Assembly: GCA_977020255.1 (NCBI GenBank) | Contig: CDROCS010001360.1 | Span: 558,001-622,000 of the forward strand | Length of the DNA: 64,000 nt | Reading direction: 5' to 3' | Origin: Obrimoposthia wandeli | Taxonomy: Eukaryota | Shown here: positions 2,629-62,794 of the stretch, piece by piece | Numbering within the stretch: position 1 is the first letter of the stretch | How the letters are laid out: every line of letters starts with the position of its first letter | Made by a program: the position numbers and the translations under genes | Notes under the pieces: generated by a model | Database searches by the model: none | Seen by the model: only the letters and a program-made list of their open reading frames with translations | Told to the model about the DNA's origin: nothing

Positions 2629-4353
2629 TTAATTGCTTACGTATGATTGTTTAATCATACTCTCTAAGCCAGCAAATGCAGATTCCATTTGCGTAATAGC
2701 GGAACCATATAAAGAAAACTGAGAAGCCATTGACGCATATTTAGAATCCAATGATGCAATAGCTTTTTCTCTTTCTGTTTCTAATTTTTCTTTTCTACTT
2801 GCAATACTTGCTTCGTATCTAGTCATCATTCCATCACTAGAATCTAATTCGTCTAAATAGTCTTGAATAACTGTTCCCATACCTAAGTATTTAGTATCAT
2901 CCGTACTTGCTAAATCTTCATCAACGGTATTTCCCAAAAATAAACTTTTGACATCATCATAATTATCGACTAATGCTTCTCCAAATTTATTTGCATCTAA
3001 AGATAAATTTCCTGATAAATCTAGTTCCAAACCAAAATTAAATAAATTCAAATCATTATCTTTTCCATAAGATCCAAATAAATTATCTTTAATAGAACTA
3101 ACTAATGAACGTAGTGCAGCATTATCATTCATTACTCCATCTGCTTTGCCTGTTTCTGTTGTAACCAAATCTACAAGAGCATTGTAACTACCAATCATAG
3201 TTTGTAAACCGTTTAAAATAGCACTGGTGTCTTTTTGGATATCAATAGTAGCTTTACCTGTCTCTACAGCAGTCATAGTTAAGTTTCCTTGAATAGTTAC
3301 TGTATTTGATGCTACGTCATAGTCAATACCATCAATATTAGCTTTAAGGTTTTGAGCTTTTTGTACTTGATTTGTAGTGTATCCTAAATCTATAGTAGTT
3401 TGTGCAATGTTAAGTGAACTTCCATCATCCACACTAATATCAAATGTCGTTCCATCCGATACCGTCGCCGTTATTCCCGGAATTGCATCTATTGAAACTT
3501 GTAAATCTGCATATGTAGTAGTTGCAGTTGTTGTAATTACATTTCCATTTATATTTAACTCTCCAGCACCTACTAAATCATTAGTAACGTCAGGAATAGT
3601 ATTTGTTGATGATTGACTGTCTCCAAATCCTAGATTAAAGTTTGTTTGAGTAATTGTTAATTCATTATCTTGTCCTGATTCACTACTTTTAATAACTAAT
3701 CTATATTCATCGGTACCAACTGCTTCAATTGAAGCGATAAAATTTTCATTATCATTAATTTCTGCAGCTAGTTCAACAATTGTCTTAGCACCCATATCTG
3801 CAATTAATACTTGAGTAGGATCTTGAACAATGCTAAAATCAAAAGTTTCAGTTCCAATTTTTATTGAGATACCTGCTGCTGCAACTAATGCAGCTGAAGA
3901 ATCATCAATTGCACTCATTTGGGCATCTTTTGAAGTTTCATTAAATGATATACTTTGATATACATCTCTTTGAGATAATTGTGATACATCAATATTTGTC
4001 GTACCCGGCTCTAGTCCACCTATATCAACAGCATCAAAAACAGCTGCTGATCCTGTAGTAGAGGCTGATACAGCTTCAAAAGCTGTAGTACCAGTTGTAT
4101 CAGCATCAAAAATAGACATTTTTGACATTAAATCAAGTGCTTGTGCTTTTATAACACTCAACGTGGACGCTTCTCCAAGAGTATCCAATACTTTACCTGT
4201 ATCAGCATCTAGACCTGTTATATCTTCTAGTTGTTGGTCAGTATTAAATAATACAGAACCTTTCTCTGCATTTTTTAATTTTTCTAATAACTCACCGTTT
4301 AGAGCACTTGCTCCACCTGTACTAAAACTTCCTAATAAACTGTAATCTGCCAT
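2629..4353 (-). CDS. fliD: Flagellar filament cap protein FliD
   Basis: N-term L...LLEKLKNAEK; central YRLVIKSSESGQDN; C-term LDSKYASMASQFSLYGSAITQMES; between flgK and fliS. Confidence 0.92.
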   Translation of the reverse strand: MADYSLLGSFSTGGASALNGELLEKLKNAEKGSVLFNTDQQLEDITGLDADTGKVLDTLGEASTLSVIKAQALDLMSKMSIFDADTTGTTAFEAVSASTTGSAAVFDAVDIGGLEPGTTNIDVSQLSQRDVYQSISFNETSKDAQMSAIDDSSAALVAAAGISIKIGTETFDFSIVQDPTQVLIADMGAKTIVELAAEINDNENFIASIEAVGTDEYRLVIKSSESGQDNELTITQTNFNLGFGDSQSSTNTIPDVTNDLVGAGELNINGNVITTTATTTYADLQVSIDAIPGITATVSDGTTFDISVDDGSSLNIAQTTIDLGYTTNQVQKAQNLKANIDGIDYDVASNTVTIQGNLTMTAVETGKATIDIQKDTSAILNGLQTMIGSYNALVDLVTTETGKADGVMNDNAALRSLVSSIKDNLFGSYGKDNDLNLFNFGLELDLSGNLSLDANKFGEALVDNYDDVKSLFLGNTVDEDLASTDDTKYLGMGTVIQDYLDELDSSDGMMTRYEASIASRKEKLETEREKAIASLDSKYASMASQFSLYGSAITQMESAFAGLESMIKQSYVSN

Positions 4354-4378
4354 GATTTATCCTTTCATATTTTTAAAT

Positions 4379-7048
4379 TTATCTTTTTAGATTCAGTAAT
4401 GTTTGTAACATTTCATCGACTACTGTAATCATTTTTGCATTTGCTTCATATCCTGACTGGAATTTAATCAGTTGAATCATCTCTTCATCTTTATCAACTT
4501 TTGTTAATTTATCATATGTTGATTGTATTGATTCTGTTACTGCTTCTTGTGATGTTTGATTAAAAATCACATTTTCCCTTGTATCTGCTATGGTAACTCT
4601 TAATGTTTGAAAGTATTCAGAAAATGATGCTGTATCTAATCCATCCTGATTAAAGTCGATATCTGTTTTCCACTGAATACTTGATAGATAGTCTAACTTT
4701 TGTTGAGATAAATTATTAACATTATTATCTTGGAACTGTAAAGTTTTTACATCAGCTCCTTTAAATAATCCTATGTTAGTTAAACCAATTCCACTATCAT
4801 CTATTTGTGCAGAATCCAGTCCATGTACATAAACCCCTGAAGAAGTTTCGATAAAATCCGAAGAATAATCAGATAATTTTTCAGCAAAATTATCTAACAT
4901 CTGTTTATATTCAGCAAAATTATTATTTCCAGAATCAGTTTTAAGATTATCAATCATTGGTTTTAGCATTCCTCCACTTAAAGATATTTTTTTGTCAAAT
5001 ATTTCTACATGAATATCATCTATGCCTTCTGTTGATAAATTATTTTCTTTTGAAATATTTATACCTACATAGTTGCCAGTTGTAGTGTCTTTATTTGAAT
5101 TGTCGTTTACTAACACTTCTCCTTTAAAAACTCCTGCTTCTCCATCAATATTTGATTCTACATATAGAAATCTATCTTTATTTGGAGATACTAAATCGTA
5201 GTCTGAATGTAAAGGGTTATTCGTTAATATTTTTGTACCATCATCTGCCAATTCATATTTACCATTATATGCAGTTATTTGACCACCAATGTAGTTTTGT
5301 TGATTGATTTTGTACACTAAAGCATTAATTACATTTTCTGCATCAACAATATCTTCTGTATTTGTTAATCCATCATTATTTATATCAGCAGGAGTTATCC
5401 CATCAGCTTCATAGATTATTTCTCCATGAGTTACAGTTATGGTATGTTCATTATCAAGAGTGTATGTTACTTTATCTTCTTCTGCACCTTTTGTTGTTTC
5501 AACACTTCTTTCATACTCCATACCTCTACTTGATGTTGCTTCTAGAACTGCAACATCACTCATATGTGGTTCATATGTAATAGTTAAGTTTCCAGTTGTA
5601 TCCGCTGTGATACTTTTTATTTGCTTATTTGCATTAGCTGGATCAGTATTCCAATTCCATAAAATATCACTTTGCAGTGGTCCATTTGGTAATGCTGGAT
5701 CAAATCCTAGTACTGCATCAGCTGCAATTAATGCTGCTGTTTGGGCTGCTGTTTCTCCAGTAGCAGAACTTGGAATAGCTGTTGACAAAAAATAGGCAGG
5801 ACTACTTGTTGTAGTACCTGTTAATGCAAGCGTCTGTACTTCTGAGATACTACTTGTTTCTCCTCCTCTTTGCATTTCTATACTATCTGAGAAAGTTATT
5901 CCATTTTCTGTTGATGCTGTTATATCAGGAATATTTCCTTCTGTATTTTGATAAGTAATTTGTAATACTGAAGTTCCTGCTCCATATGGTTGTGTAATTG
6001 ATGATATCTGTTTTGTTGGATTTGCAGTATTCCAATCTGTAACTAGTGTTCCTAAATTACCGACAATATGATCCGCAACAGATTCTGGAGTATTAAATGC
6101 TGATGCAGAATTGTTAACTGTAAAAGTTTGATCTAAAAAGTTAAAGCTATCAGCTCCTGAAGTTGTAGTCACACCACCACTAAGAGAAATATTTTGTATT
6201 TCTTGGTTTGAACTAGCTCCAATTTGTTTTCCCCATGTAGTTTTATCTATGATATTACTATCAAGAGGAATAATTGCGCTACCATCGGCATCTTTTTTTA
6301 CATAAGCATCTGCTTGTGGGGTATAGTTTTCAACTAGATTAATTTCTCTTACATTTGTATCAAATCTAATAGCAGTTACTCCCCCTATTTTGAGATGATA
6401 GGTAGATTCCCTTGTAACTTCTACATCAATATATTTAGCTAACTCTTTTTCTAAATTATCTCGTTTATCTAGTAAATCATTATTTTGTGTTGTTGACTCG
6501 GTTATTTCCTTACTAATATCACCTATACTTTTAAGTATGCTATTAATTTCACCAACCGCTAATTTTGCTTCACCTAGTGTAGATTCTTCTAAGTCTTCAA
6601 TACCTGAATAAAGTTCTTGCAGATTAGTTACTAAGATATTTCCATTACTTGCTAAATCTGATTTATAAATTGGATTACTTGGACTTGTTTTTAAATTTTC
6701 TATTGATTTAAAGTATCTATTTAAATCAGCAGATAAACCCGTATCTTCTGTTTCATAAAATATTGATTCGATACTGTTAAGCATTGAGTTTAGTGTTTTT
6801 ACATCACTTAGTTTGGCTTCTTCTTTTACAAGCTTATCAAACATATAAAGATCAGTAACCCTTGAAACACCATCTATAAATACACCCCGACCAGTCATCC
6901 TTGAATCATTGTGTTCAATTTCTGAGATATTCACAACTCGTTTTTTATAACCTGGTGTATGTTCATTTGCCAAGTTGTTCATCACATTTTCAACTTGCGT
7001 TTGAGATGATCTTAGTCCTGATTGTGCTACATTTAGTATATTTAACAT
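4379..7048 (-). CDS. flgK: Hook-filament junction protein FlgK, unusually long (889 aa)
   Basis: N-term LNVAQSGLRSSQ...NNLANEHTPGYKKR; C-term VDKDEEMIQLIKFQSGYEANAKMITVVDEML. Confidence 0.93.
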   Translation of the reverse strand: MLNILNVAQSGLRSSQTQVENVMNNLANEHTPGYKKRVVNISEIEHNDSRMTGRGVFIDGVSRVTDLYMFDKLVKEEAKLSDVKTLNSMLNSIESIFYETEDTGLSADLNRYFKSIENLKTSPSNPIYKSDLASNGNILVTNLQELYSGIEDLEESTLGEAKLAVGEINSILKSIGDISKEITESTTQNNDLLDKRDNLEKELAKYIDVEVTRESTYHLKIGGVTAIRFDTNVREINLVENYTPQADAYVKKDADGSAIIPLDSNIIDKTTWGKQIGASSNQEIQNISLSGGVTTTSGADSFNFLDQTFTVNNSASAFNTPESVADHIVGNLGTLVTDWNTANPTKQISSITQPYGAGTSVLQITYQNTEGNIPDITASTENGITFSDSIEMQRGGETSSISEVQTLALTGTTTSSPAYFLSTAIPSSATGETAAQTAALIAADAVLGFDPALPNGPLQSDILWNWNTDPANANKQIKSITADTTGNLTITYEPHMSDVAVLEATSSRGMEYERSVETTKGAEEDKVTYTLDNEHTITVTHGEIIYEADGITPADINNDGLTNTEDIVDAENVINALVYKINQQNYIGGQITAYNGKYELADDGTKILTNNPLHSDYDLVSPNKDRFLYVESNIDGEAGVFKGEVLVNDNSNKDTTTGNYVGINISKENNLSTEGIDDIHVEIFDKKISLSGGMLKPMIDNLKTDSGNNNFAEYKQMLDNFAEKLSDYSSDFIETSSGVYVHGLDSAQIDDSGIGLTNIGLFKGADVKTLQFQDNNVNNLSQQKLDYLSSIQWKTDIDFNQDGLDTASFSEYFQTLRVTIADTRENVIFNQTSQEAVTESIQSTYDKLTKVDKDEEMIQLIKFQSGYEANAKMITVVDEMLQTLLNLKR

Positions 7049-7102
7049 GCTTATTCCTCTATTTACTTATACAATAATACTATTGCAATTCTTAAAATTA
7101 GA

Positions 7103-7810
7103 TTAAAATGGAGAGATGCTCTCTATCAATCTTGTTCCCCAACCTTGATTTAGTGAATCAGATTCTACGCCTTCTTTATCATATAGAATCTTTAAATTTG
7201 CCAATTGATATGAAAATACAGTGTTTTCTGGACTAATATCATAAGGTCTTATGATCCCGCTTATTTGGATATTTTGTTTTTGTCCATTTATCAATATTTC
7301 TTTATTACCCTTTATAAAGTAATTACCATTTTGATATGTATCTTCAATGATTGCAGAAATTGTCGTAGTAAATTCTTCATCAGCTTTTGATGTTGCTGAA
7401 CCTTTAAAATTATTAGTAGTACCTGAATTAAAACCTACTCCCAATAAACTATTATTAAGTTTATTTACTTTATTTAATGTTCCAGTAGATGGTGCAGTAC
7501 CAAGAGAGCCAAATATTCCACCACCAATATTTGTAGTATTTGCTTTTTTTAACTCTCTTTCGTCAGTTGAGTCATTAGTTAACGTTTCTTCAATTTTTAC
7601 TTGAATAATATCTCCTATTTGCAGTTCTTTTTTATCTGCAAATAATGAGGCACCTCTTCTGGAATATAGTGCACCTTTTCTTTTTATTGATGGTTCAATT
7701 TTTTTAGTAACTTGCATTGTTGGTTTTTTGTCTATATTAATTTCTGGTTGGGTAGTACAGCCAACAAATAATATGGATAGAAAAAAAAGAATTGAAATTT
7801 TATGAATCAT
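7103..7810 (-). CDS. flgH: Flagellar L-ring lipoprotein FlgH
   Basis: Lipobox FVGC; LFADKKELQIGDIIQV; ISGIIRPYDI; GWGTRLIESISPF. Confidence 0.95.
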   Translation of the reverse strand: MIHKISILFFLSILFVGCTTQPEINIDKKPTMQVTKKIEPSIKRKGALYSRRGASLFADKKELQIGDIIQVKIEETLTNDSTDERELKKANTTNIGGGIFGSLGTAPSTGTLNKVNKLNNSLLGVGFNSGTTNNFKGSATSKADEEFTTTISAIIEDTYQNGNYFIKGNKEILINGQKQNIQISGIIRPYDISPENTVFSYQLANLKILYDKEGVESDSLNQGWGTRLIESISPF

Positions 7811-8222
7811 ATTTATTCTCCACTATAGTTTTTAAATCAATTGCTATTTTGATGTGATGTGTTGTATTTTTAACCATTGCACCTACACCGTATCTTATTA
7901 AAAGAGGTTCAATATCTGTAGTAAAATCAGAAATTATATATAACTTATCTTTAACGATTTTAATTGATTGTATGTGTTTCTGTTCCAATAAATTGACTAT
8001 AATAATTGCTTCTTTATAGATTGCTTTTTCTAAGTTTATAGATTTATCAATTTCTTTTTTAATAATTGTTTGATCTAATTTATTTACTAAGTCTGTATTT
8101 TGTTCTTGAAATTTATTGCTCATATGGTCGTAATAAAACCAGAACATTATTATAAGAGAAAACATTGATAATGCTTTGATTAATAATTGATTCTTATTTC
8201 TTGTTTTTAATATTATTATCAT
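7800..8222 (-). CDS. Hypothetical single-pass membrane protein in the flagellar operon
   Basis: N-terminal TM helix; overlaps the flgH start. Confidence 0.7.
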   Translation of the reverse strand: MIIILKTRNKNQLLIKALSMFSLIIMFWFYYDHMSNKFQEQNTDLVNKLDQTIIKKEIDKSINLEKAIYKEAIIIVNLLEQKHIQSIKIVKDKLYIISDFTTDIEPLLIRYGVGAMVKNTTHHIKIAIDLKTIVENKYDS

Positions 8223-8239
8223 GCTATTCTCTTTATTGC

Positions 8240-8782
8240 TTATTTAATTACAAATGACGTAAAGAATATATCTAAAACCATATTTTTCATTATGTCGTCA
8301 TTTCCATCTGTTGAATCGTTTAAGATATTATTTAGCTCATCAATCATTTCTTCTTTAAGCATAGCTTTACCCCCAACTGTAAGTAATTCTTCACTACTTC
8401 TTGCACTAATTTGTCTGATTACTGAATCTACCATTTCCGCTTTATTTGCTTCAATTAAAGATTCAATTGTTGGTTCACTTGCTTTCATAGTAAATGATAA
8501 TTTCATTAATTTAGCTCGACCTTTAGCATCAGTAATATTTAGTACTAGACTGTTTATACTAGCTTGAAAAGTTTCGCCAATCTCTTCTTTTTCCATCGTT
8601 ATATTTTTTTCAGCAACAGGTGCTGCTGCATTCATAGGTTGATCGCTAAATAGACCTTTTGCGTACATAAAGTAACCTATCCCACCAATAGCTAATAATA
8701 AAAGTATAACTAGTCCTACTAGAACCATCATCATTGGATTTTTATTACCTTTTTTTGCTTCTACTTCTTTTTCTTCAGCCAT
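8240..8782 (-). CDS. fliL: Flagellar basal body-associated protein FliL
   Basis: N-terminal TM; LVLNITD..GRAKLMKLSF; LLTVGGKAMLKEEM; IFFTSFVIK C-terminus. Confidence 0.92.
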   Translation of the reverse strand: MAEEKEVEAKKGNKNPMMMVLVGLVILLLLAIGGIGYFMYAKGLFSDQPMNAAAPVAEKNITMEKEEIGETFQASINSLVLNITDAKGRAKLMKLSFTMKASEPTIESLIEANKAEMVDSVIRQISARSSEELLTVGGKAMLKEEMIDELNNILNDSTDGNDDIMKNMVLDIFFTSFVIK

Positions 8783-8794
8783 CTTTTACTTCTC

Positions 8795-9283
8795 CTATTT
8801 TTTCTTATTTTCTTTATTTATTCTCATTTTTTTCATTAGAACAGTTGACACTTTAGTATCAAATTTTTTAAGTATTTTCATAACTCTTTTTTCTTTCATT
8901 CTCATCATTATATCAAATACTTCATCAATTTCACCATTTGCTATCATTTCATTAAAAACGTTAATAACTACACCTAATTTCATTTTATCGTACATTAACA
9001 TTGCTTTACTTGTAATAACACGATTTATTTCATCAAGAATATCTTGATTTGATTTTTTAACATTGATTATGTTTTGTTCAGATTCTTTGATACTTTTTTG
9101 AAGTTTTTCTAGTTCTTCTTTATTCTTTTGATAACCCAATTCTTTAATTTCATAGAATTCATTAAGTTCATCTTTTACAGCTATTAGCTCTTGTTTTTCT
9201 TTATATAACGCGCCTTCTTTGGTTGTGACTGCATTCGCAAAATTTAATAATAAAAATGTACAAAGTATAATTTTAGTAAGCAT
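8795..9283 (-). CDS. MotE/FlbB-like periplasmic coiled-coil protein
   Basis: Signal peptide, coiled coil and a C-terminal helical repeat (MKEKRVMKILKKFD); follows the fliJ-like gene as in Campylobacter. Confidence 0.7.
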   Translation of the reverse strand: MLTKIILCTFLLLNFANAVTTKEGALYKEKQELIAVKDELNEFYEIKELGYQKNKEELEKLQKSIKESEQNIINVKKSNQDILDEINRVITSKAMLMYDKMKLGVVINVFNEMIANGEIDEVFDIMMRMKEKRVMKILKKFDTKVSTVLMKKMRINKENKKK

Positions 9284-9698
9284 TTAAATCCTTTTTATTT
9301 TGAATATATTTTGCTTGCATATATTCAGCTGCAACTATTTCTTCATCTTTTAGTATCTGTTTTAATTTTTTCTTTTTATTTTCTTGTAAGATGTAATTAA
9401 ATTGTTCACTTTCTTTATTTAACGAAAGAATAATTTTATCGTAATAATCAATTTGTTGTTTTAGTTTAACTTTTTTTTGATTCAATTTAATCATATGCTC
9501 TTTCATTGTTTCTTTATGGATTTGCAAAACTCTAAAATCAGAAATCGCACCCATAATATCAAGTGTTGCCGTATGATAAGAATGATTTGTATCATATAAT
9601 TCTGCATCTATATCTTCTATTTTAGATAGCGACTGTTGTTTTAGTAAAACTTGCTGATTAATTTGTTGTTGTTTTAATTTATATAATTTATCAATCAT
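9273..9698 (-). CDS. FliJ-like flagellar export chaperone
   Basis: 141-aa all-helical Gln/Lys-rich coiled coil after fliQ; ESEQFNYI...DEEIVAAEY C-terminal pattern. Confidence 0.65.
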   Translation of the reverse strand: MIDKLYKLKQQQINQQVLLKQQSLSKIEDIDAELYDTNHSYHTATLDIMGAISDFRVLQIHKETMKEHMIKLNQKKVKLKQQIDYYDKIILSLNKESEQFNYILQENKKKKLKQILKDEEIVAAEYMQAKYIQNKKDLNAY

Positions 9699-9961
9699 TC
9701 TATTTTACCAAATTCTATAATCATATTCCAAAGTTCCATAGTATAACCCTCTATATTATCACCAATCCAAGGAAGTGAAATAACAATAAAAACTGAAACT
9801 ATAATCATTTTAGGTACAAAGGATAATGACGCATCACTAATTTGTGTAACCGCTTGAAAAATACTAATAATTAGTCCAATCACCATACTTACTATTAATG
9901 ATGGTAAACCAAGTAAAAGAATTATAGAAACAGTACTTTGTGATATTGCAATTAAATCCAT
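9695..9961 (-). CDS. fliQ: Flagellar export gate protein FliQ
   Basis: GLIISIFQAVTQISDASLSFVPK signature. Confidence 0.96.
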   Translation of the reverse strand: MDLIAISQSTVSIILLLGLPSLIVSMVIGLIISIFQAVTQISDASLSFVPKMIIVSVFIVISLPWIGDNIEGYTMELWNMIIEFGKIE

Positions 9962-9962
9962 T

Positions 9963-10337
9963 TTAATCTTTTATTTTTATTGTGATCTCAATTGTTTTAT
10001 TATTTAATAATTGACTTAATAAAGAAGCTAAATCATTTGATTTGAAAGTTGATTCAACCATTTGTATTTTTTCATCTTTATTTTCGATTTCTGGAATATT
10101 TTCATTTACTTCATTATAAGTATTATCAATTGTGTCTTCTAAGTTTTCAATTTTTATTTCTTCAGTTTCTTCTTCTAATGATAGATCTTCATTGAAGTCT
10201 TTAATATTTATGTTTTCACTAATTTCTTTTATACTTATTTCTTTGTTATTATTTTCATTAGAAATTGCTGTTTCTTGTCCCAGTGCTTCTAGTATATCTG
10301 ATTCGATTAGTTCATCTAATTGTGATAGTTCATCCAT
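9963..10337 (-). CDS. Acidic hypothetical protein in the flagellar operon
   Basis: 124 aa; start codon shares a base with the upstream stop; acidic linker between short terminal helices. Confidence 0.7.
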   Translation of the reverse strand: MDELSQLDELIESDILEALGQETAISNENNNKEISIKEISENINIKDFNEDLSLEEETEEIKIENLEDTIDNTYNEVNENIPEIENKDEKIQMVESTFKSNDLASLLSQLLNNKTIEITIKIKD

Positions 10338-10807
10338 TATTCAGCCTTTTTAAGTATTTCTGCATTATCGATATCTTCAAAAGCTTCAAAAATATCCTCT
10401 ACTGTATTTATTTCTGTAGCTTTAGGCTTTTTTATTGCAGTTTCTAATCTTTTTTCTATGTATAAAAGTAAATCAGTATAAGTTCTTTGACTTATATCTC
10501 CTATCCCATGATGATCCAAAAATTCTTTTGTAATTCCATCTTTTGGAAGAAGAAATTTTAAATATTTAGAGATGAAATCATCTTCAATAATTTTATTCTC
10601 ATCGATAAGAAAAATTTGATAAGGGTCTTCTATTATTAATTCTTTTAAATAACGTAATGTTGTTACATCAACTACATCTCCGTCTTCGATTTTAAATCTA
10701 ATGTTTCCATGGTCAAGAATTTTGTGTATTTCATTATTAAATGTTGTACTACCATAAATATATATATTCACAAGAAACCTCAATGTTAAATTATTTACCT
10801 TAATCAT
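10337..10807 (-). CDS. Hypothetical protein heading the leftward flagellar operon
   Basis: 156-aa ORF divergent from flgI. Confidence 0.7.
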   Translation of the reverse strand: MIKVNNLTLRFLVNIYIYGSTTFNNEIHKILDHGNIRFKIEDGDVVDVTTLRYLKELIIEDPYQIFLIDENKIIEDDFISKYLKFLLPKDGITKEFLDHHGIGDISQRTYTDLLLYIEKRLETAIKKPKATEINTVEDIFEAFEDIDNAEILKKAE

Positions 10808-10874
10808 ATCTTTATTTTATTAAAATTTAGATAAAATGATTTAGATAACAAATAAGTATATAGGATGACACAAA

Positions 10875-11933
10875 TTGAAAAATATTTTATTGACGCTTTT
10901 TCTTGCAATTACCATTTATGGTCAAACTATCAAAGATATATCAAACATTGTAGGTATAAGAGAAAATCAACTAATAGGACATGGTTTGGTTGTAGGATTA
11001 CCAGGTACGGGTGATAAAAGTCAATTTACAATGCAATCATTACAAAATCTTTTAAGAAATTCATACATTAAAATACCAGCATCTTCAATTAAATCTAAAA
11101 ATATAGCAACGGTTATGGTTACAGCAGTACTTCCTCCTTTTGCAAGGCAAGGAGATAAATTAAAATTAAGTATTTCTTCCATTGGTGATGCAAAATCTAT
11201 TGATGGTGGACAATTACTTTTGACACAATTAAAAGGTGTTGATGGTAAAGTATATGCCTTGGCTCAAGGTTCAATTATTGCGGGTGATGATATAAAAACG
11301 AATGGTTTAATTTATGATGGGGCTATTGTGGAAAATGAATTGTCTTATTCTTTAAAAGATGAAAAATATATTACACTAAGTCTTTTAAAACATGATGCAT
11401 CAATTGCATCGATAATTGAAGATAAAGTAAATAAAAAATATGGTAAAAAAATTGCAGTTGCTTATGATACTAGAACAATTGAAATATCAAAACCACATGA
11501 TACTTCAATAATACGTTTTATATCTGAAATACAAGGCATTAAAATTGATACAATGATGAAAAATAAAATTATTATTGATCCAAAAAAAGAAATTATTATT
11601 GCAGGTTCTGATATAACAATTAATCCAGTAACAATTTCAAGAAAAAATTTTACAATTAGAATTAAAAAAAGTGATCTTTCTGATAAAGCTTGGGAAGATC
11701 CTTTAAAAAATATAGGTGTTGATGTTGGGGATAATACTAAAGTTGAGAAAATTCCTGGAGCAGTTGATGTAGATATTGATAATGCATTAATTAATACAAA
11801 AAATCAACCTACTGTATCGGATTTAATGAGGGCAATGAAAACAATGAAACTTGACATTATGGAAATTATAGAAACTATAAAAATGCTTGATAGTTTAGGT
11901 GCTATTAATGCTGATGTAGAGATGGTTAGATAA
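10875..11933 (+). CDS. flgI: Flagellar P-ring protein FlgI
   Basis: TTG start; IVGIRENQLIGHGLVVGLPGTGD; DGKVYALAQG; LGAINADV. Confidence 0.96.
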   Translation: MKNILLTLFLAITIYGQTIKDISNIVGIRENQLIGHGLVVGLPGTGDKSQFTMQSLQNLLRNSYIKIPASSIKSKNIATVMVTAVLPPFARQGDKLKLSISSIGDAKSIDGGQLLLTQLKGVDGKVYALAQGSIIAGDDIKTNGLIYDGAIVENELSYSLKDEKYITLSLLKHDASIASIIEDKVNKKYGKKIAVAYDTRTIEISKPHDTSIIRFISEIQGIKIDTMMKNKIIIDPKKEIIIAGSDITINPVTISRKNFTIRIKKSDLSDKAWEDPLKNIGVDVGDNTKVEKIPGAVDVDIDNALINTKNQPTVSDLMRAMKTMKLDIMEIIETIKMLDSLGAINADVEMVR

Positions 11934-11934
11934 A

Positions 11935-13035
11935 ATGGCAGAATTTTTAAGTCAAGATGAAATTGATGCATTATTAGACATTGCGGATGAAGATGGTGCG
12001 TTAGAAGATTTACCTTCAGATGGTGGAAGTCCAAGTAAAGATAAAAGTTATGCTATATATGACTTTAAAAAACCAAATCGTATTTCTGCGGAGCAAATGA
12101 AAGCATTTAGTGCATTACATGATAAGATGTTGAGAACAACTATTAGTGAACTCTCCGCAATGCTAAGAAAAATAGTTGATGTTAAACTTTACAGTATTGA
12201 GCAAATGACATATGGGGAATTTATTCTTTCAATACCTCAAATTACAAGTTTGAATACTTTATCAATAAAACCATTAGAAGGTAGAATTGTAATGGAGTGT
12301 AACCCTGCAATTAGTCATAAAATTATTGCTCATTTACTTGGTAATGGTGAGAGTTCTTTGACTGATTCTACAGAAAAAGAACTGACTGAAATAGAATTAC
12401 AAGTATTTAACCACTTTTATCAACTTATTATGAAAAATTTAAAAAAAGCATGGGATGATGTTTCAACAATAAATCTTAAAACTGAAAGTATGGATACAAA
12501 TGCAAATGCTATTCAAATTATTTCAGATCATGAGATTGTATTATTGGTAGTATTTGAAATAACTATTGATGATGAATCAGGATTTTTATCTATTTGTTAT
12601 CCTATTTCCTATATAGAATCTTTATTGGATTTAATTGTGGAAAAAATATTTGCGGAAGCAAAAAATAGAAAAGTAAGTAAGAAAAAAGATATTAATGCGT
12701 TGATTTCTGGTTCTCAAATGAAAATTGATGTTATGCTTGCTGAAACAGAAATGGATGTTAAAGAGCTATTGGACTTAAAAGCTGATGATGTTATAGTATT
12801 TAGTAAAAATGCAACTAGTGCATCATCTAAAGTTTATATAAACAATAAAGAAAAATGGTCAGCTACTGCAGGGTCTTCAAATAATCGTAAGGCTATTCAA
12901 ATCAAGTCAAATATTGATCATGAAAAAATGGAGACATTAAATTCATTAAAAGAATTTAATGACGAAAGAGCAGAAAGAGCAAAATCAGCAAGTGATGCAA
13001 TCGCAAAACTTATAGCAACAAGAGATCAATTTTAG
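11935..13035 (+). CDS. fliM: Flagellar motor switch protein FliM
   Basis: LSQDEIDALL CheY-binding peptide; YDFKKPNRISAEQ; C-terminal SpoA domain. Confidence 0.96.
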   Translation: MAEFLSQDEIDALLDIADEDGALEDLPSDGGSPSKDKSYAIYDFKKPNRISAEQMKAFSALHDKMLRTTISELSAMLRKIVDVKLYSIEQMTYGEFILSIPQITSLNTLSIKPLEGRIVMECNPAISHKIIAHLLGNGESSLTDSTEKELTEIELQVFNHFYQLIMKNLKKAWDDVSTINLKTESMDTNANAIQIISDHEIVLLVVFEITIDDESGFLSICYPISYIESLLDLIVEKIFAEAKNRKVSKKKDINALISGSQMKIDVMLAETEMDVKELLDLKADDVIVFSKNATSASSKVYINNKEKWSATAGSSNNRKAIQIKSNIDHEKMETLNSLKEFNDERAERAKSASDAIAKLIATRDQF

Positions 13036-55983: not shown

Positions 55984-57749
55984 GACTAAAAGTAATAATA
56001 GGATTTATAGTTTTTATTATATGTCTTCTATTAGGTAGAGTATACTATCTAAGCGTAATTTCAAATGAACATTTTGAAAAACTTTCACAAAAAAACTACA
56101 TTAAAAAAATACATAATGCTGCATCAAGGGGTTCTATATTAGATAGAAATGGGAAGTATTTAGCTGTAAATAGAGTAGGGTTTAGTATCAATATTAAACC
56201 ACATTTACGAAGTAAGACAAAGTTTAAAAATGTAGAAGAAGTTGCTACTTTAATTGTCAAGTATTTTCCAAAATTCAAGTATAAAAAATTAATAAAAAAG
56301 TATAAACAATTAGATTCTCCTTATCGTCATGATTTAGTTCAACTTGTGGATTACATATCGTATGATGAATTTTTTAAATTTTATACGATTTTTAATTCAA
56401 ATGAAAATGTTGAAATCAAGTCTTCAACAATACGAGAATATTTATATAATGATGTTGGTGCTCATGTATTGGGATATATGGGAAAAACAACTAAACGAGA
56501 TATTAGAGAAGATGAAAATAGTAAGTACTATGATACCTCAGGACGAAGTGGAATAGAAAAATATTATGATAAAGAACTAAGAGGTAAATTAGGCTTTCAA
56601 GAGGTACAGGTAAATTCTCTTTACCAAAAAATTAAGGTTTTAAATGAAGTTAAACCAGAGAAAAAAGATATAAAGTTAACTATTGATATAGATTTGCAAA
56701 AATATATTCATACTCAATTTGGTGACAAATCAGGGGCCGTTATTGTTATGAATGTTGATAATGGCGAACTCTTGGCAGCAGGGAGTTTTCCCGAGTTCGA
56801 TAACAATTTATTTGTTAATGGAATTAGCCATAAAGCATGGAAAAAAATTCAAGATAATTTTAATCATCCATTTACCAATAAATTAATTAATGGTACTTAT
56901 CCTCCCGGTTCTGTTATGAAAATGGGTGTTGCTTTATCTTTTTTAGAAAATAAAATTTCTCCAAAATTTAGTGTTTATTGTAATGGTTCAATGCAACTTG
57001 GTGACAGGAATTTCAGGTGTTGGAAACCCACAGGTCATGCACATACTTCTTTTGTTAAAGCAATAAGTGAGAGTTGTGATGACTTCTTTTATAAAGGAAG
57101 TTTAAAAGTAGGTATTAATAATATACATGACACATTAGATAGATTTGGAATAGGTAAAAAAACAGGTATTGATTTACCAAATGAATCATCAGGTATTAAT
57201 CCAAATAAAAAATGGAAAAGGGCGGTTAGAAAACTTCCTTGGTATGTAGGTGAAACAGTAGTTGCTTCTATAGGTCAAGGGTTTATTAATGTTACTCCAA
57301 TGCAAATTGCTAGGTATACTGGGGCTATGGCAACAAATAAACTGCAAGTACCTCATTTCTTAAAAGATGATTCATTAATTGAAAGTGTTGATACTAATAT
57401 TTCAAAAAGAAATTTAAAAATCATACAAAAAGGTATGTATGCAGTTGCAAATAAACCTAGAGGAACAGCAGTACATTATATTAAGTCAAAAACTAAGGTT
57501 GCTGCAAAAACAGGAACAGCTCAGGTAGTAGGTATTCCCCAATCTGAGAAGAAAAGAATGAAAGAGCATGAGTTGGAATATTTTCAAAGATCTCAAGCTT
57601 GGCTTACTACATATGCTCCTTATCAAAATCCAAAATATGTTGTTACCATTTTAGTTGAACATGGTGGTCATGGTGGTAGTGCTGCTGGACCAATGGCTGG
57701 TAAAATATATGATAAATTAATAGAATTAGGATATATGAATGAAAAATAA
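55980..57749 (+). CDS. mrdA: Penicillin-binding protein 2
   Basis: RGSILDRNG, GRSGIE, SxxK (PGSVMK), SxD (SCD), KTGT. Confidence 0.95.
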   Translation: MRLKVIIGFIVFIICLLLGRVYYLSVISNEHFEKLSQKNYIKKIHNAASRGSILDRNGKYLAVNRVGFSINIKPHLRSKTKFKNVEEVATLIVKYFPKFKYKKLIKKYKQLDSPYRHDLVQLVDYISYDEFFKFYTIFNSNENVEIKSSTIREYLYNDVGAHVLGYMGKTTKRDIREDENSKYYDTSGRSGIEKYYDKELRGKLGFQEVQVNSLYQKIKVLNEVKPEKKDIKLTIDIDLQKYIHTQFGDKSGAVIVMNVDNGELLAAGSFPEFDNNLFVNGISHKAWKKIQDNFNHPFTNKLINGTYPPGSVMKMGVALSFLENKISPKFSVYCNGSMQLGDRNFRCWKPTGHAHTSFVKAISESCDDFFYKGSLKVGINNIHDTLDRFGIGKKTGIDLPNESSGINPNKKWKRAVRKLPWYVGETVVASIGQGFINVTPMQIARYTGAMATNKLQVPHFLKDDSLIESVDTNISKRNLKIIQKGMYAVANKPRGTAVHYIKSKTKVAAKTGTAQVVGIPQSEKKRMKEHELEYFQRSQAWLTTYAPYQNPKYVVTILVEHGGHGGSAAGPMAGKIYDKLIELGYMNEK

Positions 57750-58695
57750 TGAATTATTTAAAGATATGTATAATATTATTTTAGAGTCTCATTATGTACT
57801 TCTCGTGACACATAAAAATCCGGATGCGGATACAATTTCATCCGCTTTATCTTTGAGTAATTATTTTTATGAAAATAAGATAAAACATAAAGTGTTTAAT
57901 ATCTCATCGATTTTGCCACGTAAATTAAATTTTTTATCAAAATTTGATAAAATCACTAGTGAAATACCAAAGTTTTATGATTTAATAATTTATTTAGACT
58001 GTGCTGATGAGCATCGCGTGGGGCAAGAGTTTTTAAGTAACGTAAAAACGATCTCGATTGATCATCATAAATCTAATAGTAAGTTTGCAAGTATAAACAT
58101 ACTTGATGATACAAAAGGAAGTACATCTGAATTATTGTATTCTTTTTTTAAAGAGAATCAATTAAAAATATCTAAAAATGTTGCAGAATGTTTATACACT
58201 GGAATATATGATGATAGTTTAGCTTTTACAACACCAAAGACGGATAAAGAAACATTTACCGTAGTCAACGATTTGTTAAATAGTAAAATTAATATTTCCT
58301 CAATATCAAATAATCTATTACAAAGAGAATCGTTATCTAAATTTAGAATTATTCCTAAAATAATGAATACATTAGAGCTTTATAAAGAAGGAAAACTTGC
58401 GACAGTCTATTTAGATAGTTCATGGCTTAAAGAAACAGGAGCTTTAAGTGAAGAATGTGATGATATTGTTGATATGGTATTATGTATTGGTATAGTAGAG
58501 ATTGTCTCATATTTTAGAATTGTTGATAATAAAGTAAGAGTTTCTCTTCGAAGTAAGGGAAATATAGATGTTTCCGTGATTGCTAGTAAGTTTGGTGGTG
58601 GAGGGCATAAACATTCAGCAGGAATATCTTTGTCTTCTAGTGATTATAAAATCACTAGAAGAGAAGTTGTTAATGTTATTCTAGATTACATCTAA
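57739..58695 (+). CDS. DHH/DHHA1 phosphoesterase (NrnA-like)
   Basis: HKNPDAD, LDC, IDHH, GGGHKHSAG. Confidence 0.92.
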   Translation: MKNNELFKDMYNIILESHYVLLVTHKNPDADTISSALSLSNYFYENKIKHKVFNISSILPRKLNFLSKFDKITSEIPKFYDLIIYLDCADEHRVGQEFLSNVKTISIDHHKSNSKFASINILDDTKGSTSELLYSFFKENQLKISKNVAECLYTGIYDDSLAFTTPKTDKETFTVVNDLLNSKINISSISNNLLQRESLSKFRIIPKIMNTLELYKEGKLATVYLDSSWLKETGALSEECDDIVDMVLCIGIVEIVSYFRIVDNKVRVSLRSKGNIDVSVIASKFGGGGHKHSAGISLSSSDYKITRREVVNVILDYI

Positions 58696-60193
58696 TATTA
58701 AATTCTTCTTCTGTTACATTAACAGCATTACTGCTTATAGAGGAATTACTATCTTCTATTAATTGTATCATGTTTGATTGTAATGATTGTGTTTCAAATG
58801 GACCGATATAGATAGTTGTTTTACCATTCTTATTATTACATATGGAAATTCGAGCTTGATTTGTATTTGTTTTTTGTACTAATTCTTTAAATAAACCATA
58901 CTTTAAACTACTTGTAACAACGTAATGTAGTGTTTTTATTTCAATTTTATTTGTATCAATTACAACTTTACTTTTTTCCATTATAATGACAGGTTTTTCT
59001 ATCTTTACAGGTATTGCAGGTGTATTATCTGTAATAATGACATCGTCTTTTTCTACAGTAAATGTTTCTTTTTTAAACTTTGTTTTTTTATCAATTATAC
59101 GAGGTTCATCAAGTATTTTTTTCTCAAATAGTGCTTCTTCTTGATTTCTTTTAGAAAAGGCAAGAAGTTCTTTTTCTTTTTCTAATTCAAATAGTCTATT
59201 CTTTTCAGATAACTTTTGTGCTTCTAATTCATCTTTATTTAGTACTTTATATTTAGTTAATTCAGATAGTTTACTGTTCAATCTATCTTTATCGATATCA
59301 GATACTTTAAATAGGACCTTCTTAAGTGTCGTGTATTTAATCACCTCTACTTTATTTTTGTCTTTAACCATTTGTGTGGTGTTAGTATCTTTTGGTTTTT
59401 CCACTATTGGTTCTGAATCAAATGTTCCTATAAAATACATAATTAAAAATGAAATTATTATAAAGCCTAATAATCCTCCAACTGCAAAAATTATTAGCTT
59501 TAACTTTTTTTCATTTTTTCCTAAAGTGGCATCCAAATCAGATTTATCATCTTCACGTTCATCATCTGTATTTGTATTTTTATTATCCGGTTTTTGATCT
59601 TCTTTTGCCTCAATAATTTCATCTTCTTGAATTGTTTCTTTTTCAACCACTTCATCATAATGTGTTATTTCGGAAGAAGTGATTTCACTAACGAACGGCA
59701 GTATGGCTTCATCAAATGTAATAAATATAATTAATTCATTTCCTTCTAAGTCTACTAGGAATTTGTATGTATTTTCTAAATTTGTTACATCTTTCCCTTG
59801 AATGATTTCTTTATGGGAAATATTAAACTTTGTTTGTCCTATATCCTCAAATTCAGCACCATTTATTGAAGTGGTTAATGTTCCTGAGGTGTTAGATATA
59901 AATTCACCAATTGCATCTTCTGAATCATCATCTATTTCATCGGCTAATTCTGTGATAGGTGAACCCATCATTGTATTAAAAATTAGAGAAGAACTTTTGG
60001 CTGGTACGAAAAATGAAAACTCTGAAGAGAAATTGGAAAAGTCAAATACAGATTGTACTTTTAATACTTGGAGTTCTTCTAAATCTTTAATATGTGTTTG
60101 TGTAATTTTAAGGATTTTTGCATCTTTTGCAAGAAGTCCATTTAATGTAAGCGTAATACTATCTTGTATTAATTTTGATAAATCTGAAGCCAT
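58676..60193 (-). CDS. CheC/FliY-like domain, TM and C-terminal SPOR-like domain protein
   Basis: DAIGEFISNTSG CheC-like motif; TM LIIFAVGGLLGFIIISFLIMYFIG; IYIGPFET SPOR-like motif. Confidence 0.6.
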   Translation of the reverse strand: MASDLSKLIQDSITLTLNGLLAKDAKILKITQTHIKDLEELQVLKVQSVFDFSNFSSEFSFFVPAKSSSLIFNTMMGSPITELADEIDDDSEDAIGEFISNTSGTLTTSINGAEFEDIGQTKFNISHKEIIQGKDVTNLENTYKFLVDLEGNELIIFITFDEAILPFVSEITSSEITHYDEVVEKETIQEDEIIEAKEDQKPDNKNTNTDDEREDDKSDLDATLGKNEKKLKLIIFAVGGLLGFIIISFLIMYFIGTFDSEPIVEKPKDTNTTQMVKDKNKVEVIKYTTLKKVLFKVSDIDKDRLNSKLSELTKYKVLNKDELEAQKLSEKNRLFELEKEKELLAFSKRNQEEALFEKKILDEPRIIDKKTKFKKETFTVEKDDVIITDNTPAIPVKIEKPVIIMEKSKVVIDTNKIEIKTLHYVVTSSLKYGLFKELVQKTNTNQARISICNNKNGKTTIYIGPFETQSLQSNMIQLIEDSNSSISSNAVNVTEEEFNIRCNLE

Positions 60194-60195
60194 AT

Positions 60196-60627
60196 TTATT
60201 TTTCCAATTTTTTATTTAATCTGTTTTGTTTTTGTTGTTCCAAGATTTTTTCTTTATTTTTTCTGTAATATTCTTTTCTATATTCTTTTAGTTTTTCTTT
60301 TTTCTTATCTCGATATTCTTTGTCATACTCTAGACGTATTTCTTTATTATCTTCATAATATTTTTGTTTTTTTGAACGATATTCTTCTATTTTCTTTTTA
60401 ATAATATCTTCTCTTGATTGAATATGCTCTTTTTGCTTTCGTGCAATATCTCTAAGTTTTTCAGAAAAATTTCCCCCAAAAAGCTCAACCTCATAATCTA
60501 TAGAATTTATTTTTTTTATTTCAGTTTGCTTCTTATTTATTTTAGATTTAAGATAATAAGCTCTTTTTTTACGTTTATGCTCTAAAAGTTTTTCTTCTCT
60601 TCTTTTTTTTAATTCACTTAAATCCAT
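60196..60627 (-). CDS. Highly basic Lys/Arg/Glu-rich hypothetical protein
   Basis: 143 aa; repeated Y-Y-x-x-N-K-E units; between flgG and the CheC-like gene. Confidence 0.7.
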   Translation of the reverse strand: MDLSELKKRREEKLLEHKRKKRAYYLKSKINKKQTEIKKINSIDYEVELFGGNFSEKLRDIARKQKEHIQSREDIIKKKIEEYRSKKQKYYEDNKEIRLEYDKEYRDKKKEKLKEYRKEYYRKNKEKILEQQKQNRLNKKLEK

Positions 60628-60644
60628 AATATTAATTAAAAGTC

Positions 60645-61433
60645 TTATCTTTTCAGTTGATTAACTGTTTGAAGCATTGAGTCAGTTGTATTAATAGATT
60701 TTGAATTTGCTTCATATGCTCTTTGTGCTGTAATTAAATTAACCATCTCTGTAACTAATTGAACATTAGAACCTTCAATCATACCTTGTCTAAGTGATCC
60801 AACTCCATCTATTCCTGGAGTTGCTTCAATAGGATCTCCTGAAGTATTTGTTGCTAAGTATAGGCTATCTCCTTGCGGAGCTAATCCTGCTGGGTTAATA
60901 AAGTTTACTAATGTAATTTGACCCAATACTGATGTTTCTCCTGTTGTAGCATTTTGTCCAGTAACTGTTCCATCTTGTGCAATTGAAATTTTTATAAGAT
61001 CAGATGGGATTACAATTTCTGGATCAAGTTTATATCCTTGCGAGTCGACCATTGCCCCTTCACTGTCAAGTTTAAAACCACCATTTTTAGTATATGCAGT
61101 TTCTCCTGCAGGTGTTGTTATTTTAAAAAAACCATTACCTTGAATTGCCAGATCGTATGTATTTCCTGTTTCTTTTAAATTACCTTGCAAAAAGTTTTTT
61201 TGTATACCTGAAACTCTTACTCCTAATCCTGTATCTATACCCGTAGGGTTATTAGTTGTGGCAGATGTAGCACCTGCTGTATAGTTTAATGATTGGTACA
61301 TAAGATCTTGAAATTCAGCTCTATCTTGTTTAAATCCATTAGTATTTACATTGGCAATATTGTTTGAAATTACATCGATATTTGTTTGTTGAGCTGTCAT
61401 ACCTGCTGCGGCTGTGTATAATCCTCTAATCAT
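60645..61433 (-). CDS. flgG: Distal flagellar rod protein FlgG
   Basis: LYTAAAGM, SNNIANVNTNGFK, DLAIQGNGFF, GSNVQLVTEMVNLITAQRAYEANSK. Confidence 0.97.
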   Translation of the reverse strand: MIRGLYTAAAGMTAQQTNIDVISNNIANVNTNGFKQDRAEFQDLMYQSLNYTAGATSATTNNPTGIDTGLGVRVSGIQKNFLQGNLKETGNTYDLAIQGNGFFKITTPAGETAYTKNGGFKLDSEGAMVDSQGYKLDPEIVIPSDLIKISIAQDGTVTGQNATTGETSVLGQITLVNFINPAGLAPQGDSLYLATNTSGDPIEATPGIDGVGSLRQGMIEGSNVQLVTEMVNLITAQRAYEANSKSINTTDSMLQTVNQLKR

Positions 61434-61567: not shown

Positions 61568-61936
61568 ATGAGGATATTAATAGTAGATGACAGTTCAACA
61601 ATGAGAAGAATCATTGGAAACGTAGTTCAACAATTAGGTGTACCAAAAGAAGATTTTGACGAAGCAGAAGACGGTGTTATTGCCTGGAAACTGTTCCAAG
61701 AAAACAATAATTATGATGTAGTTTTAACAGACTGGAACATGCCAAATATGAATGGTCTAGAGTTAGTAAAAACTATTAGAGCAGTAGATAAGAAAGTTCC
61801 AATTGTAATGATTACTACTGAAGGTGGTAAAGGTGAAGTTATAACGGCATTAAAAGCTGGAGTTAATAATTACATAGTAAAACCTTTTAGTGCCGAAATT
61901 CTAAAAGAAAAACTAGATGGTCTAGTTAAAGTATAA
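61568..61936 (+). CDS. cheY: Chemotaxis response regulator CheY
   Basis: VDDSSTMR, TDWNMPNMNG, TTEG, YIVKPF. Confidence 0.96.
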   Translation: MRILIVDDSSTMRRIIGNVVQQLGVPKEDFDEAEDGVIAWKLFQENNNYDVVLTDWNMPNMNGLELVKTIRAVDKKVPIVMITTEGGKGEVITALKAGVNNYIVKPFSAEILKEKLDGLVKV

Positions 61937-61939
61937 CCT

Positions 61940-62794
61940 ATGAGTATGAGTCAAGAAGAAATTGAAGCACTGATGAGTGGTGCGGATGATATACAAGTTG
62001 ACGACGTTGAAGAAGAAACAAGTGAAGATGAAATTTTAGAACAAGTTTCTATTGAAGATGAAGAACCAACAGAAGAGATTAATGTAGATGATATCTTAGC
62101 TGGTATTGATGGTATTGTTGACGATGAAGAATCATTAGAAGAGATTAATGTAGATGATATCTTAGCTGGCATTGATGGTATTATTGATGATGATGAAGTG
62201 TCAGAACCTGTCTCTTCTAATAAATCGGAAGTTTCAGAAATGGAAGAAAAGATTAATAGTAATCAATACCCTTTACCAGTAAGTGATGAAAATAAAGTTG
62301 TAAACCAGTTAAATGAAGTCGCAGATGATAGTGAAGAAAAAGCTTCACAAATATTTGATGTCTTGAGTTTTATTTTAGATGAAAATACTGAAATTGCAAA
62401 ATATAATAAGAATATGTCTGAATTTATAGCTCAACAAGCAGCGTTATTAGAGTCTTTATCTGTAAAATTTCCTAATGTAAATGTGTTTTCTGAGAATTTA
62501 GAGAAAGCAAAAGATTTGTTAATTACTTCTGATGAATTAGGGTCAAAAGTAGATGCCGAAAACAATAAAGTATTTGAAGCTATGGAATTGATGCAATATC
62601 ATGATATAAATAGACAAAAAATAGAAAGAGTTATGGCAGTAATTAAAAAACTTAGTAGTTATTTAAACGGAATATTTGAAGATGATTCAGGAAAAGCTGA
62701 AGTTCAAATTGCTAAACATATTTCAGGTGATTCAAATGATATCGTTGATAGTGATGATATTGAGTCATTAATTTCAGAATTTTCAGCAGAATAA
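61940..62794 (+). CDS. cheZ: Campylobacterota-type CheZ phosphatase with acidic repeat linker
   Basis: MQYHDINRQKIERV (D-x3-Q), C-terminal DDIESLISEF; directly after cheY. Confidence 0.8.
   Translation: MSMSQEEIEALMSGADDIQVDDVEEETSEDEILEQVSIEDEEPTEEINVDDILAGIDGIVDDEESLEEINVDDILAGIDGIIDDDEVSEPVSSNKSEVSEMEEKINSNQYPLPVSDENKVVNQLNEVADDSEEKASQIFDVLSFILDENTEIAKYNKNMSEFIAQQAALLESLSVKFPNVNVFSENLEKAKDLLITSDELGSKVDAENNKVFEAMELMQYHDINRQKIERVMAVIKKLSSYLNGIFEDDSGKAEVQIAKHISGDSNDIVDSDDIESLISEFSAE
62071..62193 (+). repeat. In-frame tandem duplication, period 66 nt
   Basis: AGAAGAGATTAATGTAGATGATATCTTAGCTGG.. at 62071 and 62137; EEINVDDILAGIDGI(V/I)DD twice. Confidence 0.92.

Follow-up and report, generated by a model that had tools for sequence, protein, structure and literature searches.

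The stretch of DNA analysed here (the window: 64,000 nucleotides of contig CDROCS010001360.1, positions 558,001 to 622,000, from the Obrimoposthia wandeli assembly GCA_977020255.1; AT-rich, with a GC content of about 28 % and zero N) encodes a 505-residue protein, hereafter the target, in which a cytoplasmic domain of the FliY type is joined through a single transmembrane (TM) helix to a periplasmic part. Its gene follows flgG and a small gene, orf143, on the minus strand. An initial annotation, made from the letters of the window, had reported this open reading frame (ORF) and had placed it downstream of flgG and divergent from cheY-cheZ; the ORF list gives the frame as claimed, and family matches bear out the position. 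We conclude that the target belongs to the flagellar apparatus of the Arcobacteraceae as a bitopic inner-membrane protein, and that it probably serves as an accessory or regulator of the motor peculiar to this lineage, not as a SPOR protein that binds the cell wall. Its parts are as follows (pLDDT, predicted local distance difference test).

58676-60193, minus strand: target coding sequence, 505 aa, ATG start, the long form of the slot after flgG-orf143
59648-60193, minus strand: cytoplasmic FliY-type CheC-like head, residues 1-182 (AlphaFold2, Foldseek, identity to FliY, tree)
59882-59917, minus strand: helix motif DAIGEFISNTSG, residues 93-104, counterpart in the FliY lineage of the CheC/CheX active-site helix
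59510-59647, minus strand: acidic cytoplasmic tether, residues 183-228 (charge, gap-rich columns, length statistics)
59426-59500, minus strand: single TM helix, residues ~232-256, N-in/C-out (hydropathy, flanking Lys)
59108-59341, minus strand: periplasmic juxtamembrane segment and long helix, residues 285-362 (invariant residues, model, short orthologues)
58943-59107, minus strand: variable periplasmic linker, residues 363-417 (pLDDT 44-53, gap-rich columns)
58679-58942, minus strand: C-terminal periplasmic domain, residues 418-505 (beta-alpha-beta-beta-alpha-beta(+alpha), pLDDT 84-92)
58838-58840 and 58688-58690, minus strand: Cys pair of the target in the C-terminal domain, C452 and C502, respectively

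Hydropathy gives one TM helix only (peak 2.87), preceded by GKNEKKLKL and followed by FDSEP, and the lysines K227, K230 and K232 at its N-terminal flank are near-invariant. Because these lysines are N-terminal of the helix, the head has its homologue in a cytoplasmic domain and cysteines occur solely on the C-terminal side, we assign an N-in topology; the span from cytoplasm to periplasm through the inner membrane, which the initial annotation had proposed, is real as anatomy. The tether has a net charge of -11 and the whole 228-residue cytoplasmic part one of -32. Composition and variability suggest that the tether is probably disordered, as is probably also the linker at residues 363-417, judging by its low model confidence. 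The periplasmic segment carries the motif F-K-x-S-D-I-N-x-x-R-L-N-x-x-L-x-x-L-T-K-Y and is modelled with helices at residues 302-312 and 320-349 (pLDDT 74-94), while the only two cysteines of the target both fall within the final 88 residues. The acidic linker, single TM helix, charged region and C-terminal domain with two cysteines had each been described in the initial annotation, and hydropathy, charge and alignment recovered all of them, including, in the topology check that it had suggested, the one TM helix at ~232-256.

A word-index search returned 83 full-length homologues with 26-74 % identity, which, where they bear a name, are called 'hypothetical' and whose named sources are Arcobacteraceae or Campylobacterota. 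Of 1.84 billion representatives screened exhaustively with a profile, only 118 proteins scored at E<=1e-3. Given the 83 homologues of the one search and the 118 representatives of the other, the observation lies far beyond chance. A second word-index search, with a profile that included the divergent members, yielded the identical set and no wider taxonomic range. Conservation in the alignment is concentrated in the head (residues 1-182), the TM helix, residues ~285-362 and the C-terminal domain, with the acidic linker and the second linker variable; invariant residues are I300, N306, L309, L312 and F346 in the periplasmic segment and C452, G464, F498 and C502 in the C-terminal domain. In the 109 full-length members, the mostly acidic cytoplasmic linker measures 35-120 aa (median 54), and 106 of these members have exactly two periplasmic cysteines, 45-52 residues apart, a pairing that suggests a disulfide. 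One full-length member (P0067) is filed in EukProt under the eukaryote Anaeramoeba ignava; its source is presumably a bacterial symbiont or a contaminant. Automated pipelines of the Joint Genome Institute (JGI) tag a few members 'CheC' and one 'FliL'. We rejected a FliL identity, for which the FliL periplasmic domain (PF03748) would be expected, since the only match, a weak one in NCBIfam (E 9e-4, 19 bits against a cut-off of 179), covers the TM region, which explains both this match and the JGI label; the true FliL is encoded elsewhere in the window, at 8240-8782.

The AlphaFold2 model of the head, built from the domain alignment (pLDDT 94.3, predicted template-modelling score 0.89), has the order H-E-E-E-H / H-E-E-E-H, that is, the two alpha-beta3-alpha halves of the CheC-like fold. 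In a Foldseek search of the PDB, its best 38 matches were all CheC, CheX, FliY or FliM middle domains (E 1e-9 to 6e-6), headed by T. maritima FliY (4hyn, E 1e-9, template-modelling score 0.69), and the next match followed at E 6e-3. Single-sequence and profile searches of PDB sequences returned nothing significant for any part of the target (best CheX 3hm4, E 0.6), and Pfam CheX (PF13690) matched 34 of 36 members, all below threshold (best E 1.2e-4), with the window's own head at 18.8 bits, short of the gathering cut-off of 27 bits. The exhaustive search also retrieved proteins of 275-300 aa that have the head domain at residues 1-175 and a strong C-terminal FliMN_C (SPOA) domain (PF01052, E 1e-16 to 1e-21); their domain content identifies them as FliY proteins, and JGI labels some of them 'FliN/FliY'. 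FliY proteins match the family profile at E 1e-41 to 1e-3 (the closest at 1e-41 to 1e-31), and one of them, P0108, is 34 % identical to the head over 177 aa (E 1e-32), both proteins beginning MASDLS. In a maximum-likelihood tree, in whose labels the fragment P0131 is wrongly tagged FliY and P0120 is of uncertain class, the family forms a clade (support 96/86) nested in a group of FliY plus family (97/96), with sensor-type relatives outside. By profile and tree, then, the head and the N-domain of Campylobacterota FliY are paralogues. The CheC/FliY-like N-domain of the initial annotation is thus strongly supported by fold, profile and tree, and sharpened; the Foldseek check that it had proposed gave the 38 matches above.

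The target itself showed no FliMN_C/SPOA match in a Pfam scan and therefore is not a FliY. The FliN/SPOA C-terminal domain builds the base of the C-ring. No FliY was found within the 64-kb window; in related organisms, a close FliY homologue is encoded in a fliH-fliN-flgD-flgE-...-fliY-motA-motB locus. Since FliM and FliL are both encoded in the window, and close FliY homologues in a locus apart, the target is an extra copy and not a switch protein, and we rejected it as the FliM or FliY of this genome (FliM is at 11935-13035). A CheY-binding peptide of the FliM kind was likewise considered for the N-terminal 'DLSKLIQD' and rejected, since these residues form helix 1 of the folded domain (pLDDT 92-97) and recur in FliY. 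The FliY locus of the related organisms also has, between flgE and fliY-motAB, a ~665-aa TPR protein (5613-7607 in L018, 414-2426 in L017), a candidate PflB-like scaffold, along with two small ORFs that have no family match.

The FliY-like domain occurs as well in sensor-type membrane proteins, both of ~650 aa (P0150, P0152, P0159, P0162 and P0174) and of 729-978 aa (P0136, P0138, P0140 and P0184; also locus L020), and at least one of these proteins, that of the P0184 cluster, stems from an Arcobacteraceae metagenome-assembled genome. In one type a periplasmic region is flanked by two TM helices and the FliY-like domain is C-terminal; P0136, P0138 and P0184 have a dCache_3 sensor and the FliY-like domain after the second TM helix. 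Most of these relatives are missing the D-x3-E motif, and they may be sensors with a switch-docking output.

Within the head, D93 and E97 are present in 109 of 112 family members, S100 in 101 and an N or Q at residue 101 in 103, and the FliY proteins have D and E in 19/19 and Ser in 18/19. When aligned to CheX 3hm4, the family Ser occupies the position of the catalytic Asn and the Asn comes one residue later, so the observation in the initial annotation that D-x3-E is kept with the Asn shifted by one was correct. As the motif of the head is common to Campylobacterota FliY, the shifted Asn is a trait of the FliY lineage. The CheC/CheX phosphatase consensus, D/S-x3-E-x2-N-x22-P on the first helix of a half-domain, is absent from helix 1, and on helix 1' S100 replaces the Asn and K122-F123 stands where Pro is expected (+22). 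Epsilonproteobacterial FliY is reported to be without phosphatase active sites, to bind FliM, FliN and FliH, and to have a CheC domain whose position in the C-ring is unsettled (PMC6946799).

The initial annotation had called the C-terminal domain SPOR-like, SPOR domains being binders of denuded peptidoglycan. The model of this domain has the order E-H-E-E-H-E(+H), the ribonucleoprotein-like order of SPOR domains, and beta-alpha-beta-beta-alpha-beta is a very common fold class. Foldseek ranked PII-like/SbtB structures first and otherwise gave weak, generic ferredoxin-like matches (E 5e-4 to 1e-2); its top 50 contained no SPOR structure, which goes against the assignment. Pfam SPOR (PF05036) did not match the window protein and touched only 2 of 36 members (best E 0.005), and a profile search of PDB sequences at E<=10 contained no SPOR chain. 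Compared by hhalign with E. coli FtsN, DamX, DedD and RlpA, the family reached a probability of 7-10 % over 27 columns, confined to the 'IYIGPF' turn, whereas leave-one-out controls among these E. coli SPOR domains, which are themselves only 14-23 % identical, reached 74-94 % over ~60 columns, and negative controls 0.1 %. All four E. coli domains have an invariant Gln in beta1, to which nothing corresponds in beta1 of the family, 'KLxFVxxxS'. On these grounds we rejected the SPOR identity; the modelled fold class is compatible with SPOR, and membership is not supported.

In several genera the slot after orf143 holds a shorter protein (336 aa in Aliarcobacter L024, 408 aa in Halarcobacter ebronensis L025 and 326 aa in Poseidonibacter L026), in which a TM helix comes after an acidic tail of 37-100 residues and is itself followed by the DIN..LN..L..LTK segment, a charged linker and a C-terminal domain with the Cys pair; the FliY-like head is absent. 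These short orthologues align to the family by hhalign at 99.6 % and 97.3 %, and a profile of the C-terminal domain matches 19/19 slot proteins (E 1e-12 to 1e-41), a profile of the head 16/19. Because the short orthologues keep the membrane and periplasmic parts without the head, these parts are the core of the protein, and the FliY-like head was added or lost in a lineage-specific manner. In a tree of concatenated neighbour genes, which is unrooted, one branch with 100/100 support parts the long from the short forms, and one gain or one loss of the head separates them.

The genes next to the target and those of a second flagellar cluster in the window are as follows.

60196-60627, minus strand: orf143, 143 aa, between flgG and the target, ending 2 nt before the target ATG
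60645-61433, minus strand: flgG (distal rod), opening the flgG-orf143-target unit; TIGR02488, E 2.7e-104, above cut-off
61568-61936, plus strand: cheY, divergent from flgG (Pfam/NCBIfam)
61940-62794, plus strand: cheZ, epsilon-type (Pfam/NCBIfam; PF28017 CheZ_Pase on orthologues)
2629-13035: second flagellar cluster, with fliD at 2629-4353, flgK (889 aa) at 4379-7048 and flgH at 7103-7810
2629-13035, continued: fliL at 8240-8782, flgI at 10875-11933 and fliM at 11935-13035

Downstream of cheZ lie a flgF-like gene and then flgB. The arrangement flgG-orf143-target, divergent from cheY-cheZ-flgF-flgB, is kept in 19/19 Arcobacteraceae loci examined. A pattern scan found flgB-flgF-cheZ-cheY divergent from flgG-orf143-target and the latter convergent with nrnA-PBP2 in 12 Arcobacteraceae genomes (one of these loci, L004, ends inside the target gene). 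Divergent members (26-33 % identity) have rimM-rpsP-ffh or carA-purA as the downstream flank instead, and keep fliH-fliG-fliF-flgB-flgF-cheZ-cheY divergent from flgG-orf~147-target; since the downstream flank varies and the flagellar side is kept, the unit moves together with the main flagellar locus. This locus is reported to be the largest of the flagellar loci in Arcobacter and to carry CheYz-CheZ, as remnants of the ancestral F3 system and as the predicted motor-coupled pair, and Arcobacter to have lost FlgPQ and FlgVWX as well as the classical flagellar regulators (PMC9321776).

The product of orf143, which the initial annotation had overlooked, is K/E/Y-rich and very basic (net +20), and its identity across 12 loci is 70-89 %, higher conservation than that of the target. 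Its 103 homologues across Arcobacteraceae genera (named carriers are Halarcobacter, Aliarcobacter, Poseidonibacter, A. suis and A. porcinus) are all named 'hypothetical', and Pfam/NCBIfam and PDB-sequence searches gave neither a recognisable DNA- or RNA-binding domain nor a family assignment. Its K-x-YY-x-x-NKE-K repeats recur in the tails of GIY-YIG-domain proteins. It is likely the operon partner of the target. A terminator scan gave one terminator-like hairpin, located inside flgG.

Several further features of these loci were observed. The 3' end of the target overlaps a convergent DHH/DHHA1 (NrnA-like) gene (57739-58695) by 20 nt (58676-58695), and a comparable overlap of ~17-26 nt is found in 10 of 11 related loci that have the nrnA neighbour. 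CheZ starts with the strictly conserved MSMSQEEIEALM (in the window, L001-L012 and L021-L027), very close to the N-terminal CheY-P-binding peptide of FliM (the FliM of the window begins MAEFLSQDEIDALL), and ends with a conserved DDxxxLIxEF peptide; from this FliM-like start and conserved end, CheZ may carry two CheY-docking peptides. Small ORFs of the second cluster (7800-8222, 8795-9283, 9273-9698, 9963-10337 and 10337-10807) had no family match.

Taken together, we favour, with a probability of roughly 0.4, a role of the target as an inner-membrane flagellar motor accessory whose head contacts the switch complex. In this model, the core of TM helix and periplasmic part would be a static membrane-embedded accessory, laid out by analogy like the PflB, FliL, FcpN/O and PflD 'pillars' around the stators of other Campylobacterota; in the long form, the tethered head would reach down to the switch complex and bind a partner of the CheC-like domain of FliY (FliM, FliH or adjacent FliY), or CheY-P. 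CheY-P, if bound, would not be dephosphorylated, because the motif is the same as that of epsilon-type FliY. The head would thereby couple the periplasmic and membrane scaffold to the rotor and switch, affecting assembly, positioning or the modulation of rotation, and the acidic cytoplasmic part might also hold the basic orf143 product. Several points weigh against this role. Our confidence is no higher because it is mechanically awkward for a static membrane protein to touch a C-ring that rotates, unless it does so transiently, for regulation or during assembly only; moreover, its place in the motor and its binding partners are putative. The C-terminal domain has no informative structural relative, with no PilN/PilO/PflD-type match in the Foldseek top 50; synteny is kept within one family only, so that shared ancestry may explain part of it; and the promoter and terminator scans give no information either way, the former finding fewer promoter-like sites than in shuffled sequence. 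A more specific version, in which the static, anchored copy of a rotor domain engages the rotating switch through its flexible tether as a brake, clutch, docking element or assembly checkpoint, strikes us as doubtful.

Other readings account for parts of the same evidence. The head could be a membrane-anchored CheY-P phosphatase or sink that binds, and perhaps dephosphorylates, CheYz-P near the motor and so complements CheZ: its fold is that of CheC/CheX/FliY, it keeps D-x3-E with an Asn or Gln one residue past the canonical site and on the same helix face, the gene adjoins cheY-cheZ, and the JGI pipeline names some members CheC. Yet E-x2-N gives way to a near-invariant Ser where the Asn would stand, the first helix is without the site and the consensus Pro is replaced, the motif is that of a FliY reported to be without phosphatase active sites (PMC6946799), a dedicated CheZ is encoded next door and the short orthologues manage without any head, and we regard this reading as unlikely. 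We are about as sceptical of a regulatory pair, in which the basic orf143 product would bind nucleic acid and regulate flagellar genes, with the target as its anchor or anti-factor that senses assembly of the rod or envelope by means of the periplasmic domain. That the two genes are adjacent, often overlapping and always found together, that their products have opposite charges (+20 against -32 for the cytoplasmic part), that orf143 is the more conserved, that its repeats are shared with GIY-YIG nuclease-domain proteins and that Arcobacter has reportedly lost the classical flagellar regulators (PMC9321776) would all fit. The repeat similarity may, however, be compositional, orf143 is without a recognisable nucleic-acid-binding domain, and a regulatory pair gives no reason for a FliY-like head to be added or kept. 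Least probable by a clear distance is a reading along the lines of the initial annotation, in which a SPOR-type peptidoglycan anchor would tie the C-ring/chemotaxis machinery to denuded glycan at the pole or septum as a polar landmark; the fold order, the local 'IYIGPF' likeness to the beta3-alpha2 region of SPOR and the weak Pfam match in 2/36 members speak for it, and the hhalign values far below those of true divergent SPOR pairs, the absence of SPOR chains from the PDB profile search and the Foldseek top 50, and the missing beta1 Gln against it.

Literature searches turned up no publication that describes the architecture of the target, in agreement with the statement of the initial annotation that it was not known as described, although JGI already labels a few members 'CheC'. 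Here, the CheC-like domain of FliY, whose place in the C-ring and role in Campylobacterota stand open (PMC6946799), is copied onto a membrane protein; its being copied both onto the target and onto sensor-type membrane proteins of Arcobacteraceae suggests a portable docking module for a flagellar or chemotaxis partner. Sister lineages, with their natural long and short forms, offer a ready comparison for finding the partner of the head and, if the brake or clutch version were true, they would show a motor accessory gaining a rotor-derived domain. As Arcobacter-type motors are without several Campylobacter scaffolds and all classical regulators, the conserved flgG-orf143-X unit is a promising candidate for a structural or regulatory part that is still missing.

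Compared with known systems, the target is a variation within the CheC-like superfamily and the flagellar accessory proteins. With FliY of Campylobacterota it shares homology along the full length of the head, the MASDLS start and the helix motif D-A-x-x-E-x-x-S-N-x-x-G; in place of the SPOA/FliN domain, however, it has the acidic tether, TM helix and periplasmic part, it is encoded after flgG and not beside motAB or fliM, and it has the family-specific F72 and N73 in 'IFNTMMG'. The CheY-P phosphatases CheC, CheX and FliY of Thermotoga and Bacillus have the same alpha/beta fold (CheX and CheC match at E 1e-8 to 6e-6), but the head departs from their consensus on both helices, scores below the CheX cut-off and is membrane-tethered. 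SPOR domains such as those of FtsN, DamX, DedD and RlpA resemble the C-terminal domain in fold order, in the 'GP(F)' turn before helix 2 and in being periplasmic and C-terminal after a long linker, whereas the C-terminal domain fails all sequence and profile tests that recognise true SPOR domains and lacks their conserved Gln. Bitopic inner-membrane scaffolds surround the stators in C. jejuni, and the lineage of the target is one in which PflD and unfused FcpMNO are reportedly absent or altered (PMC11870540). PDB searches gave no sequence or fold match of the target to such pillar proteins, and no comparison aimed at their sequences was made. In layout, PflD, FcpN/FcpO, PflB and FliL would be its closest analogues, each built from a TM helix, a stretch that is helical or flexible and a small globular domain in the periplasm, and encoded with flagellar genes; unlike them, the target carries a C-ring-type domain on its cytoplasmic side.

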